A DNA stretch of 56,618 bases from Octopus sinensis (Eukaryota): positions 1 through 56,618 of the forward strand of contig NW_021832584.1 in assembly GCF_006345805.1 (NCBI RefSeq), given 5' to 3'. The notes beneath the pieces were generated by a model. The model ran no database searches. It worked only from the letters and a program-made list of their open reading frames with translations, and was not told the DNA's origin. A program made the translations under genes and the position numbers. The number at the start of each line of letters is the position of its first letter. Positions within the stretch are counted from its first letter, which is position 1. This document shows positions 35,452-40,756 of this stretch, piece after piece.

Positions 35452-37222
35452 ATATGACTGTTTTATTGGTTAAGTGTTAAATATCAACATTTTTCGGGCA
35501 GACATTAAATTACAAAACTCATCAAGGGACTATTTTCCATAACAGTCAGTGTCGGTTGTGCAAAATCATATTTTTTGAATCCCTTTCGCTAGTCTTTGAC
35601 TTCTTAATTATCCAAAAAGTCACTGGCATTAACACAATTATCTATTAAGCCTATACGATTTTTCAATTTGGTGGATTAAGTCAGGCGTAAACCTTTTTTT
35701 CAATTTAGTCTAGGAGAAATGATTGTTAGCTTGATTGTCCTAGGAAGTGAATCTATGCTTTAGCTGGGTGTATGGATGTGGTAGAACTTAACAACGATCG
35801 GACCTGTCTTTACCTTCCCTACAGATGTTCTAGCTTTATATGCCTTTGCAAATTCTATGAACGCAGAAAAGATCGATCAAAATATTCTGCCTTTTGCAAC
35901 TGGCTATTTTTCAAGTTCTCCTTTGCGCCAAAAACGGCAATCATTTAAATCGCTGCTAATCATGTCATCTTCTCAAGCCATAGTTCCCGCTATTTCAACT
36001 ATTACAGTAATTGGTATGGCTTCTTTAGTTACGCTTTCGTAACTCAAGCAGTTTATCGACTAACAAAAGGAAATGTTTCTTATCCAGGTAAAATCGATAC
36101 ATTAACCTTTTTATTCTCTTATTTTTCTGATCAGCAGCTGTTAGGTCAAATCAGCAGCTGTTATGAGTTAATTATTCATTTGAGACCAAGCCTATGTCAA
36201 GTTCACCGCAAACTCCACTAGAATACTGTTTATTCTGCCTATAACCAAACAATTTGAAAATCGATCAATCTATAATCAAGAATCTAAATAATACAAATTC
36301 ACCTCGCGAAGTTATCACCGATATTTTTGACTCAATGTACACGCGTGGATTTGGCTTAAGATATCTTGAACAAATCAAACAGAAAGTCCTGTTATTCTTC
36401 TCCATAATTAGTATTTTGAATGGATAGAGGTTGTAGAAACGGTCGAAGATTTACAAAATAACAGAAAAATTTGTAACAGCAAGCAACCGTCTAAGCAAAA
36501 TCCACATTTCTTTACACCTTTTATTAAAAAATTCAATAAAAAGATCACTGGAAACTTTTACTATTCTCGTTTCAGCAGGAAATATTTACCCTATAAAAGG
36601 TAGACATGCAATTATGACTGATAACACGTGATAACCAGTTTTCAAAAATGTGTGATGTCAATCACGCATTCTTTAATTCTACTGAAATTGACGTGATATC
36701 TTATTAACAACTTAGTTAACTGGAAGTGTTTTGGTTTCTTTGAAGCATCTAGAATTCTTTCTTGTCCCAATGACCATTTATTTTGGAATCTTTTTTCCCC
36801 CATAAATGCGTTTAAATGATACGTTGTTTCTCTCTTTCCAATGCTGAAGCCAACCTGAATTAGGAATAAAATCATCCATTTTCATTAACCAATTTATCCA
36901 ATTAATCGATATATATTGAATGGAAAGCATATAAAATATGTTATTGAAAATAAATTTATGTCATTAGCCGATTTATACAATTAACCAATATGCAATTGAC
37001 CAGTGTATACTGTACCAAGTTCTTAGTTCTCTTCAAGAATGAACGCTAAAGGAAAAAACTTAATAAAATTTGAAGTCAAGATTTGTTATTAAAACATCTA
37101 TTCTGAGCTTGATTTTCTTTCAGTTGAAATGAGAACTTTTCAGGGTTTTTGAATCCACATGCAGTGATCTCTTTTCCCCATTCTTACAATACATCTTCTA
37201 TTGATTCTAAAAGGAAAACAAA

Positions 37223-37356
37223 ATGAAAAATACGTTCAGTAGATCCAGTAAATCAAGCAATTGGCATTGCCTCCCTTCATTTTCAAGAAGCTGACCACTT
37301 AATTGCTCATGGCCGTCGAAAGCTAAACAACGCCGAACAAAAAATCCAAACACTGA
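37223..37356 (+). pseudogene. xseB: Bacterial exodeoxyribonuclease VII small subunit remnant
   Basis: AAGGA at 37211-37215, ATG at 37223, frameshift, then FQEADHLIAHGRRKLNNAEQKIQTL, like the XseB C-terminus (YEEAD.LI..C.K.L..AEQKI). Confidence 0.65.
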
Positions 37357-38692
37357 ATAGCATTCCCAAAAAACTTAAAAAATTCACCTTTATTCTCAAT
37401 GATAATGTCATAGCAATTACCAAAAATGTAATCGCTGTAACAAGTATTCTCAGCCACTTTTTTAATAGCTTTATTGCTAACCACATTCACGACGACCTGA
37501 TAAAAGTCATTCTAAGAATTCCAGGTTACGTAAAAACACTTATCGAGCAAAGCAATCAGATGAAAGAATCAATGAAAAACGTGATTAGCACTGCTAAATT
37601 TAAGCAGTTTGGTCTCCATCGATGTGCATGAAATCAAAAAGCTTATCGATACTATCAAAGCACTGAAAGATCAGGACCCCTTTACCCTCGTTCACATTCT
37701 TCCAGTAAAAGGACAAGGCATAAAAAGAGAAGGCATGCATCCAACGCCTTATCAAAAAGGAAAACTATTTAATAGAAAAACAGGAGAATTACATCTTTAT
37801 AAAAATCCTAGGCTAACATTCTTTAAAGTTTTTTGGAAAGCACGTTCTCAAGTTTGCTGAAGAAGATCCCAATATTGTTGCTATCACACCTGCTATGCAC
37901 GTCGGCTCTTGCTCAGATGTTTTTATGAAGCGATATCTAGACAGCTGCATAGATGCAGTCATTACCGAGGGAAACTCTTTTGCCTACTCTCTAGGTATGA
38001 GCTATAATGAAAAACTAAAAGTCATTGCCTTTGTCTAATCAACTTTCCTCCAGCGTGCTTTTGATAACATTTATCACAATGTTTGTGTTCAAAAGCATCA
38101 TTAATCGCCCTGGTCTAGCTTTTGATGATGGAATCACTGCTCAAGGGCTCTAAGATATTGAATGCCATGCCCAATATATTTATCGCGCAGCCTTGAGGCG
38201 GGAAGGAATATGCTAAAAGCCCTCCTACAAAGTGCTTTCGTATGGAAACTTCCATCTGCTATCCGCTATCCTAACTTACAGACAGTTGACGAAGAGATTC
38301 AATTCGAAAAAGTTTTTTTAGCAAAGAATCCCTTAAAAAGGAAAAAATCTAACGATAGTAGCTTTTGGCCACGTGGTGGATATTGGTCTGCAAACACGCG
38401 AGCTTTTGCTTTTAGAAGACCTTGATGGAACAGTCATCGACCAATCTTTGTTAAACCTTTGGATGAAGATACTTTGAAAATTCTCGAGGTGTTGTTATAA
38501 TTGAAAAACATTCACTTCAAAGTGGCATGGGATCGATTATCAATTCTTTTATTGTCCAAGAAGGCTTGACTCATTTACACGTTAGGAAATCAGCATGCTA
38601 ATCATGCAGACTTGTTAAAAGAAGTTGGACTTTACCCCGACAATATTGCTACAGGTTTTAGAGACTTCTTCAAAACAAACTGCCAGGGTCCA
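37352..38692 (+). pseudogene. dxs: Bacterial (Chlamydiota-type) 1-deoxy-D-xylulose-5-phosphate synthase, N-terminus deleted, multiple stops and frameshifts, intronless
   Basis: LNSIPKKLKKFTFILNDN, FKQFGL, VHILPVKGQG, AITPAM, *STFLQRAFDN (TAA 38036-38038), SAIRYPN, IVAFGHV, VID(P)IFVKPLD, IEKHSLQSGMGS, LKEVGL. Confidence 0.92.
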
Positions 38693-39523
38693 ATGAAAAA
38701 AATTGCTCTTTTTCCAAAAACTAAAGAGAAATCAAAAAATATCTTTTCTAAAAAAAGCATCCAGGTTGCTGTTGGAGATGATAAAGCAAGCGATCTTAAG
38801 AGGCACCTCTTTTCTCGGCAAACTCGTAGGATATTGAATGGTTGATCACAATGAGAGGAGATGGATCTATCTTGCGCGTAGCGCATAAGTACGCTGATAT
38901 CGATGCAGTTATTTTATGAATTAATTTCGGGCATCTCGGGTTTATGGCAGATGTTCAAATCATCAATATCATCCTCTGACTGGAAGATTTAATTCACCGG
39001 CAGTTCACATTTAAAAATAGAATAATGATCGAAGGAACATCTCAAAGTAAAAAGTCTTTCTTTTCCATAAAGAATTGTCTCCTACAACTAGTACACAATC
39101 CTATTATTATTAAAATGGCAATTTATGTTATCTTTATCTGAATAGGCTTGAAGCTGATAGTGTCATTTTAGCAACCTTTAATATGTCAACAGCTTACTCT
39201 TTAAGTTGCCGGTAGTCCTATCTTAAGCCCTGATATTAATGCTTTTGTCTTAACTTCTATTTGTTTACATACCATTTCAAATCGTCCTTTCGTTCTTACA
39301 CTAAACCGCAAAATTTAAAACGAGTATGTGAGTGAAAATGAGTCCATTGAAGTTTCTGCAATGGTCTCAACCGCTTTGAGCTAAAAACGGGAGAAACGAT
39401 TAAAATCAGACGCAGTCAAAAAAATTCAAACTCGTTAATTTAAACCACATTGACTTCTACTTTACTCTCCGAACAGAGCTCTGCTGATCCGGAAAGCTTC
39501 GTCAATCAAAGGAAATTGATTAA
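38693..39523 (+). pseudogene. nadK: Bacterial NAD kinase, full length but with stops and frameshifts
   Basis: MKKIALFP, LITMRGDGSILR (GGDG motif), IL*INFGHLGFMAD, EADSVILAT..STAYSL.AGSPILSP, HTISNRP, TLRTELC*SGKLR. Confidence 0.92.
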
Positions 39524-39535
39524 GCAGTTTCTCTC

Positions 39536-39933
39536 ATGATTCCTTTAAAACTTGCGTTTAATTTGTCCGCTTTTAACCTGACTGGAGAAAAATTTGATTC
39601 ATATCTTCGCTATCAACAAGATAAAAAAGCAATCCAAGCTCAATACTCTTTAGGAATGACCGGAATCATCTCTGCAAATCAAACGCATGGTGGTTTGATG
39701 CAAGCCCTTGGAAAACGCTTATACTACGTAACAACAGGTCCTCGTATTATCAATGGCCTTCATATTGCAGGGCGAACAATGGGATCTAAATTAAAACTAA
39801 AGCAAAGCCAGGGCTTTTTTATAATCATCATATTACATGTTTTGTTGTAGGAACCAATATAAGAAGTTGTCATTATCCTTAATGGAAAGGTTTATAAAAC
39901 TCTTAATCCAAAAGACAACTCTTTAGACTTGTG
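39536..39933 (+). pseudogene. Hypothetical bacterial-type ORF following nadK (104 aa open, broken continuation to 39933)
   Basis: ATG 12 nt after the nadK stop, intronless, same strand; no family recognised. Confidence 0.5.
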
Positions 39934-39975
39934 ATTTATCATAGTGAGCCATTAGATAAAGCATCTCTCAAAGTA

Positions 39976-39997
39976 AGGGGTGAAACCCCTCCTTTTG
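39976..39997 (+). terminator. Rho-independent terminator-like hairpin ending the bacterial segment
   Basis: AGGGGT-GAA-ACCCCT followed by CCTTTT, downstream of the last ORF. Confidence 0.5.
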
Positions 39998-40756
39998 CCT
40001 ATTATTACATGCGTATTATGCAAGCAGATCAAATAAACTTTATAAACGTTAAACCTTGTAATAAAAACTATTAATAAAATCAAGTAACCTTTCAAATGGA
40101 GAGTTGAGTCAGAGAATAATTCGGTGAACTGCTTTAATCCAGGAGAAATCGGAATAAGATCTCATGCCAAGGCCGCCCCACCGCACAGCTAAAGTCTTGT
40201 TGTATACTAATAATGATACTAAATACCGTTTTCAATATCTTTTGATAGATGAACTAAGATAGTTACTATCAATAGAGTTAAAAAATGTTAAGTTTTTCAA
40301 ATTTTTAGGAATTATCTTAGTCAGTAATTATGTCAAACTAAGTAGGTCACCCTGTCAACAATGAAGGTCGCTCTGGTCGCCAGCGTGGGGGCGACATAAT
40401 AATCTCTCACATTCAAAAATATCATCTATACCATTCCCACACTAAGTGGGATTAACACCAAACTAAGTGGGATTGGGGAGAAAACTAAATGGGATTAACA
40501 TCAAACTAAGTGGGATTAATAACGAACTTAAAGGGATCAATAAAGGATTACTTTTATTATGTCACATGCCCTGTTCGTTACCATGCCCCGCTCGTTACCA
40601 TTGCTCTAAATTTTTAAAATTTCAATTTAAAATATTTAAATGATTGAAATATATTTACTTATTAATTTAAAATTAATAATATATGGATTTTTATTTTTTC
40701 AATGCTTAACCATTATCATTAAAAAACAATAAATTAAGCATGCTGTTTTATCTCAT

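Follow-up and report, generated by a model that had tools for sequence, protein, structure and literature searches.

Remnants of a chlamydial gene string in probable dicyemid mesozoan DNA within an octopus genome assembly

The stretch of DNA analyzed here, referred to as the window, comprises positions 1 to 56,618 (56,618 nucleotides, forward strand) of contig NW_021832584.1 in RefSeq assembly GCF_006345805.1, which is filed under Octopus sinensis. On its plus strand at 37224-40075, the window carries the remnants of a string of bacterial genes in chlamydial order, consisting of xseB (exonuclease VII small subunit), dxs (1-deoxy-D-xylulose-5-phosphate synthase) and nadK (NAD kinase), followed by the C-terminal quarter of a DUF3604 gene. 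Single open pieces of the string match the Pfam families DXP_synthase_N (5.7e-9), Transket_pyr (2.6e-6), Transketolase_C and, weakly, Exonuc_VII_S (0.0097). With the proteins of the two closest metagenome-assembled genomes (MAGs) as tblastn queries, XseB residues 39-63 align to 37281-37355 (72% identity), Dxs residues 155-628 to 37344-38689 and NadK residues 1-280 to 38693-39502. The Dxs read-through translation of 452 residues reaches E = 1.5e-165 against a set of 5.8 billion proteins, which is far beyond chance, and aligns over its full length with its best matches, P0001 and P0002, at 64% identity. The NadK read-through contains the domains NAD_kinase_C (2e-14) and NAD_kinase (1.8e-6) and is 60-64% identical to its counterparts at loci L011 and L014. 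Taken together, identities of the Dxs and NadK read-throughs to uncultured Chlamydiales MAGs range up to 70%, from 61%. The Pfam, tblastn and Dxs results thus bear out the co-oriented gene string recognized in a preliminary description of the window that had been made from the letters alone.

At the nucleotide level, positions 37354-39505 align with 6473-8732 of MAG locus L014 at 69-72% identity, and 37280-37359 align with the xseB gene of that locus (5846-5925) at 81%. The adjoining segment 37224-37279 has weak similarity to xseB, starts with ATG and is preceded by AAAGGAA, the Shine-Dalgarno-like motif pointed out in the preliminary description. The large deletions reported there are also present: 547 bp of donor sequence are gone between xseB and dxs, including the 3' end of xseB and dxs codons 1-154. 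When the dxs remnant is assessed as a family member, three domains are detectable, the frame is broken about nine times and the N-terminal 154 residues are deleted, together with the GDG thiamine-diphosphate region of the alignment. Because of this deletion and the roughly nine frame breaks, the remnant is classed as a Dxs-family pseudogene and not as a member enzyme. A sensitive tblastn search of 35500-41000 with xseA and the genes downstream of nadK from the two closest MAGs yields only chance-level matches outside 37270-39510, and no xseA remnant is detectable.

The last gene of the string had initially been described as a separate open reading frame (ORF) followed by a terminator hairpin. 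This ORF (39536-39850, 104 codons), when searched among 1.8 billion representative proteins, obtains six weak matches, all of them to DUF3604, with the best to WP_238578424 of Neochlamydia sp. TUME1 (E = 6.9e-8). With DUF3604 proteins as tblastn queries, similarity continues through stops and frame changes to 40029 and corresponds to residues ~448-584 of a 599-residue family member. Because the similarity runs past its end, the ORF is better described as the longest open piece of a fourth, frameshifted pseudogene that has lost its first three quarters than as a gene of its own. The predicted hairpin does exist at 39976-39990, within the DUF3604 remnant, where it encodes RGETPPF in alignment with the conserved motif KKPPFVFYY. 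The region contains 2 terminator-like sites, and shuffled sequence yields 2.1 +/- 1.3; the hairpin is therefore a chance structure and not an intrinsic (rho-independent) terminator. A DUF3604 family search of the assembly returns no match and misses even the known remnant, and is therefore uninformative.

The decay of the insert is evident from several kinds of change. Relative to the two nearest relatives, nine sense codons have become stops by substitution (positions in Table 1). These comprise the three named in the preliminary description, which are Dxs Y391 (TAT>TAA at 38036), NadK G84 (GGA>TGA at 38917) and NadK W275 (TGG>TGA at 39485), and six more. The nucleotide alignment contains 16 deletions (136 bp) versus 3 small insertions, and about 16 of these indels shift the frame. 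Changes assigned to the window lineage are distributed over codon positions 1, 2 and 3 as 86/74/45, versus 13/7/55 and 22/10/52 in the two bacterial (MAG) lineages. At sites that are identical in three chlamydiae, the window differs at 16.7%, 12.2% and 25.6% of positions 1, 2 and 3 (~16% overall), which corresponds to roughly 0.15 substitutions per site in the absence of constraint. GC>AT changes outnumber AT>GC changes in the insert by 124 to 52, and the GC content of the insert (36.6%) has drifted from that of its relatives (42-43%) toward that of its flanks (31-36%). This is a pattern of long neutral decay and not that of a living bacterial genome. Stops, frameshifting indels, a strong deletion bias, two large deletions and the GC-to-AT drift show that the insert has never been under selection since its integration.

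The 104-codon frame, which stays open among broken neighbors, could be taken as a sign that some gene in the string is still functional or has been domesticated, for example as an expressed NadK or as a product of this frame itself. This is extremely improbable, since the frame is an internal fragment of a family of about 600 residues whose homology continues beyond the stop in other frames, since about three ORFs of this length are expected by chance in the AT-rich window (our own estimate), and since each gene carries several stops and frameshifts that are common to all copies of the locus. The insert is a non-functional fossil that does nothing for its host.

The donor of the fossil is placed among the chlamydiae by similarity, phylogeny and gene order. 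The best Dxs matches are uncultured MAGs labeled 'Chlamydiales bacterium' (61-62% identity), followed by Simkaniaceae and Neptunochlamydia (51-57%) and Protochlamydia (42%). In a Dxs scan of one genome per species, chlamydial loci have 34-52% identity and other bacteria 32% or less. A maximum-likelihood tree of Dxs places the fossil inside Chlamydiota (support 100/100), in a clade with Simkania negevensis, Neptunochlamydia and Simkaniaceae MAGs (100/100), within an uncultured subclade of 13 rows (100/99) and next to P0001 and P0002 (96/94). An independent NadK tree likewise places it in Chlamydiota (98), with the two MAG loci (95) and with a Simkaniaceae MAG (99). In all 13 chlamydial loci examined (the two nearest MAG loci and 11 others), the genes are arranged as xseA-xseB-dxs-nadK and dxs abuts nadK. 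The chlamydial origin of environmental type and the chlamydial synteny that were suggested at the outset are thus both upheld, with Dxs and NadK falling inside Chlamydiota and not outside. These results support a donor from a Simkaniaceae-side lineage of Chlamydiota, and its nearest MAGs are labeled only 'Chlamydiales bacterium'. A literature search for the habitat of these MAGs did not find their accession numbers.

The genes are also foreign to the genome around them. To our knowledge, animals lack Dxs and the methylerythritol phosphate (MEP) pathway to which it belongs. Isoprenoids in animals come from the mevalonate route, and a mevalonate-diphosphate decarboxylase (MVD) gene lies in the same window as the insert. 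Because the host has the mevalonate route, a Dxs gene is foreign to it.

The insert is present in the assembly more than once. The assembly comprises 2.72 Gb in 13,516 contigs, among which the window contig is designated C9055. A Dxs family search of the whole assembly identifies four places only, on C9055, C8695, C9489 and C10659, and all of them are broken. The four contigs are collinear with the window across both junctions (34111-40560 and beyond) at 98.7-99.8% identity, share its lesions and differ from one another at 14 sites in the 2279-bp insert versus 10 in 2224 bp of the left flank. A fifth copy is located at C10659:26827-28776 (minus strand), on the contig that also has the fourth copy and about 24 kb away from it. 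It consists of the left flank and the first 700 bp of the chlamydial insert, and it aligns with 36400-37900 over the whole length, including the left junction, at 94% identity (95% for the flank alone). This copy is a paralogue, diverged by 5-6% and derived from an older segmental duplication, and because it spans the left junction, the locus must have been duplicated after integration. The germline integration proposed in the preliminary description gains support from copies with common flanks and junctions, although there are five such copies and not one.

The copies also give the fossil a relative chronology. The decay of ~0.15 per site compares with 0.05-0.06 for the paralogue and 0.002-0.013 among the near-identical copies, so that the age of the integration is a multiple of that of the duplication and exceeds that of the present haplotypes by a wide margin. 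The occurrence of several haplotype-like copies and one 5-6% diverged paralogue in a single assembly would imply long residence in a lineage and bears on heritability. One of the nine stops, at 39316 (NadK codon 218), varies among the copies: T is present in three of them (TAA), and C9489 has C (CAA), the sense codon that both chlamydial relatives have here. At this site, decay therefore continues to segregate. After integration, the locus was duplicated together with its flanks; among the near-identical copies, one acquired a retroelement, and another still has the sense codon at the site of this stop. The retroelement, 2.1 kb in length, is found only in the window copy, where 6 bp are duplicated at the insertion site, and not in C8695 and C9489.

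These observations bear directly on whether the fossil could be an assembly chimera or a contaminant, in which reads from a live chlamydia were mis-joined to eukaryotic DNA. In favor of such an artifact, the contigs concerned are small, unplaced parts of an assembly that is large, and in three cases the copy is situated close to the end of its contig. Against this, the junctions and lesions are identical on four contigs and a 94% paralogue exists in addition, the many stops and frameshifts come with a neutral codon-position pattern, and the composition has drifted to host values. In the 2.72-Gb assembly, there is also no match to XseA and no intact Dxs. Because neither intact gene occurs, a separate chlamydial contaminant with intact frames, which the preliminary description had named as an outcome that would refute it, is excluded as the source, and the chimera explanation as a whole has next to no probability.

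The genome that carries the fossil must be distinguished from the octopus under which it is filed. The mitochondrial COX1 of the assembly is 100% identical to that of Octopus vulgaris, and the assembly includes chromosome-size contigs. Around the gene string, the preliminary description had noted host genes with tiny introns and eukaryotic transposons, and both are found: the MVD and CBF/Mak21 genes of the window contain ten GT..AG introns of 22-30 nt, and the transposon remnants are of the RVT_1, DDE_1 and PIF1 types. The window retroelement has at least 60 copies (88-99% identity), all on small unplaced contigs. Neither this retroelement nor the flank repeats have a copy on the chromosome-size contigs, which make up nearly all of the assembly, and the three repeat families of the left flank in particular (Table 1) are absent from them. 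Contigs of this set also carry alpha- and beta-tubulin genes with introns of ~24-30 nt, and one tubulin-type contig, C7755, bears the window's retroelement as well. An unplaced contig with 35% GC, C8694, has an intronless gene for an ATP synthase beta that shares 98% identity with its counterpart in Dicyema acuticephalum and at most 83% with those of other animals.

Published data on dicyemid mesozoans agree with these features. The ATP synthase beta gene of D. acuticephalum is intronless and dicyemid introns measure 26.2 +/- 1.9 nt (PMC2222250). Apart from dicyemids, myxobolid myxozoans are the only animals known to have introns of less than 30 nt (PMC13644364). For the genome of D. japonicum, a GC content of 36.7%, a repeat content of 49% and a heterozygosity of 1.24% have been published (PMC6736024), and these values match the window and its haplotype-like copies. 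The window is very probably dicyemid DNA and not octopus DNA, and the animal parasite that the preliminary description had assumed as carrier is then a dicyemid mesozoan whose contigs were assembled together with those of Octopus vulgaris. Dicyemids are standard kidney parasites of octopuses.

Two other carriers were considered. A transfer from a chlamydia to the cephalopod itself would fit the O. vulgaris mitochondrion and the filing of the contigs under Octopus, yet it is highly improbable given introns of 22-30 nt, the restriction of all scored copies of the transposon and flank repeats to small unplaced contigs with none on chromosome-size contigs, and a Dicyema-type ATP synthase beta among these contigs. 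The carrier could alternatively be another tiny-intron eukaryote of the octopus, such as a renal ciliate like Chromidina. Introns of ~25 nt occur in ciliates too (PMC2222250 cites Paramecium), and no gene on the window contig has a match to a named dicyemid. A ciliate is nevertheless very unlikely, as the long ORFs and exons fit the standard code with no in-frame TAA or TAG, the repeats are of animal type (RVT_1 LINE-like, with LINE standing for long interspersed nuclear element; pogo DDE_1; PIF1 helicase), the GC content and repeat load match D. japonicum (PMC6736024), and the one eukaryote besides the octopus that is strongly identified in the assembly resembles Dicyema.

The explanation favored here, with a probability of roughly 0.88, is that the window preserves a defunct fragment of a chlamydial chromosome, now fixed in the nuclear DNA of a dicyemid mesozoan that resembles Dicyema and lives as a parasite in the octopus kidney. 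Several observations weigh against it. The evidence for the junctions is at the level of assembled contigs, and the four near-identical copies are either haplotypes (alleles) or recent duplicates. Over 200 kb, C8694 shares only two repeat pieces (81-86% identity) with the window, the protein match to a named dicyemid sits on C8694 and not on the window contig, and the link between the two contigs is indirect, consisting of intron size, GC content and shared repeats that are excluded from octopus chromosomes. In addition, DUF3604 is not found downstream of nadK in the 13 chlamydial loci examined or beside nadK in Neochlamydia. Since this adjacency is missing in chlamydial loci, the fossil may be composed of two separate regions of the donor or have undergone a large internal deletion; either the donor order differed at DUF3604 or more than 1.3 kb were lost inside the insert.

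Under the dicyemid explanation, DNA from a Simkaniaceae-side chlamydia would have reached the germ-line nucleus of the parasite. The simplest source would be a bacterium living inside dicyemid cells, and an alternative would be the endocytosis of chlamydiae from the octopus kidney. A fragment with xseB-dxs-nadK and the DUF3604 gene, either contiguous or after internal deletion, would then have been joined next to host interspersed repeats, presumably by end joining. The original fragment would have measured at least 3 kb for xseB to nadK, or ~5 kb if DUF3604 was contiguous with them.

The preliminary description had also deduced a past or present intracellular chlamydial partner, which remains an inference. 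A tentative proposal, doubtful on present evidence, is that an intracellular chlamydia similar to Simkaniaceae lived in dicyemids, or still does, with access to their germ cells (axoblasts). If it is true, the octopus, the mesozoan and the chlamydia would form a nesting of three levels, with the fossil as its first trace, and more chlamydial fragments, some possibly in use, might exist in dicyemid contigs. The assembly contains no chlamydial contigs, although it may have been decontaminated and for that reason says nothing about a living partner. Decontamination is routine for published octopus assemblies and is described for another assembly (PMC10700109). That publication, on xcOctVulg1.1, reports 226 scaffolds, which distinguishes it from the assembly of 13,516 contigs used here.

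The fossil can be compared with several known systems. Nuclear Wolbachia insertions in insects and filarial nematodes were reportedly described by Dunning Hotopp et al. in 2007 and in later work, and the transfer of endosymbiont DNA to animal genomes is well documented for Wolbachia. As in those cases, DNA of an intracellular bacterium appears to have entered a host germ-line genome; such inserts keep their operon order at first, are mostly non-functional, decay through stops, frameshifts and deletions, and become duplicated and invaded by transposons of the host. Unlike them, the donor belongs to Chlamydiota and not to Alphaproteobacteria, the host is a dicyemid mesozoan with no known living symbiont, only ~2.8 kb is found, and the decay (~0.15 substitutions per site) is much deeper. 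With the xseA-xseB-dxs-nadK cluster of Chlamydiota (for example in MAG GCA_024233375.1 and Simkaniaceae MAG JANQJL01), the fossil shares genes, order, orientation and the abutting of dxs and nadK, at 60-70% protein and 69-72% DNA identity, whereas it differs in having no xseA, in the deleted xseB 3' and dxs 5' ends, in its broken frames throughout and in the DUF3604 remnant downstream.

Plants, algae and some protists possess genes of chlamydial origin that are ancient, contain introns, are expressed and have a function. These genes have in common with the fossil a chlamydial donor and a eukaryotic nuclear recipient, whereas the fossil is an unexpressed-looking string of pseudogenes in bacterial organization and in an animal. 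Nuclear mitochondrial insertions (NUMTs), several of which occur in this assembly, are likewise organelle or endosymbiont DNA inserted by end joining and subject to neutral decay afterwards, unlike the fossil in that their source is a resident organelle and not a foreign bacterium. For a nuclear DNA fossil of bacterium-to-animal type, the analysis found a bacterial phylogeny, continuity with host DNA on both sides at contig level and no co-sequenced living bacterium.

A search of the full-text literature found no paper linking dicyemids with chlamydiae beyond incidental co-mentions, no paper covering Simkaniaceae together with cephalopods and no animal genome reported to contain a string of chlamydial pseudogenes. 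Horizontal transfer is not mentioned in the two dicyemid genome papers. The fossil is indirect historical evidence that marine chlamydiae on the Simkania/Neptunochlamydia side once had intimate germ-line access in a very simple animal. It offers a concrete target in the search for a present chlamydial partner and can serve as a rare genomic change in dicyemid phylogeny. Although biologically inert, the insert is useful as a marker of past events and as a sign that the assembly is contaminated across species. The filing of dicyemid contigs as octopus matters for the gene catalogues and repeat annotations built from the assembly, which at the same time is a ready source of dicyemid genome sequence.

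Table 1. Coordinates of the fossil gene string and of other features in the window.
Feature	Position	Strand	Remarks
xseB remnant (exonuclease VII small subunit)	37224..37359	+	Frameshifted, 3'-truncated; Exonuc_VII_S, tblastn, DNA alignment
dxs pseudogene (1-deoxy-D-xylulose-5-phosphate synthase)	37344..38692	+	Residues ~155-628; stops 38036, 38151, 38194, 38334
nadK pseudogene (NAD kinase)	38693..39505	+	Full length, broken; stops 38827, 38917, 38977, 39316 (polymorphic), 39485
DUF3604 remnant	39620..40029	+	C-terminal ~140 residues; stops and frameshifts; overlaps ORF 39536-39850 and hairpin 39976-39990
Left flank, three short host interspersed repeat families	36620..37015		Recur at 80-93% on dozens of small unplaced contigs
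Haplotype-specific retroelement insertion right of the fossil	40561..42640	+	RVT_1 1.8e-22, GGTTAG repeat
CBF/Mak21-family gene	38..1700	+	22-30-nt introns
MVD gene	10400..11700	minus	22-30-nt introns
Second RVT_1 reverse transcriptase remnant	26096..26803	+	
Lactate/malate dehydrogenase fragment	27386..27658	+	
5S rRNA gene	33704..33822	minus	Complete; Rfam 81.7 bits
96-bp tandem array	44954..45889		9.8 copies, 97% identical
PIF1-type helicase remnant	46646..47458	+	Helitron-like
pogo-type DDE_1 transposase remnant	52582..53181	minus	

Several further observations concern the window and the assembly. The retroelement insertion to the right of the fossil is made up of two repeat families, one of which has an RVT_1 ORF at 41313-42002. 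It also contains a degenerate telomere-type array, (GGTTAG)n, at 40757-41073, and this array suggests that the insertion may be a retroelement that bears telomere repeats. A changed genetic code was considered for the first gene of the window and was rejected, as the in-frame stops lie within GT..AG introns of 27-30 nt whose length is a multiple of three. The 5S rRNA gene lies 3.4 kb to the left of the fossil and is apparently a dispersed single copy.

Many dicyemid contigs are filed as octopus, examples being C8694:316300-319300, C7755:474300-477700 and C10215:88000-91200. A full-length COX1 at C1425:413645-414982 scores equal to the mitochondrial contig C13516 and is either a NUMT of very recent origin or the result of mitochondrial DNA having been wrongly joined to a nuclear contig; NUMT fragments of greater age are present on several chromosomes. 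The 96-bp tandem array of the window keeps a frame of 170 codons open and is much longer in C9489 (L009).

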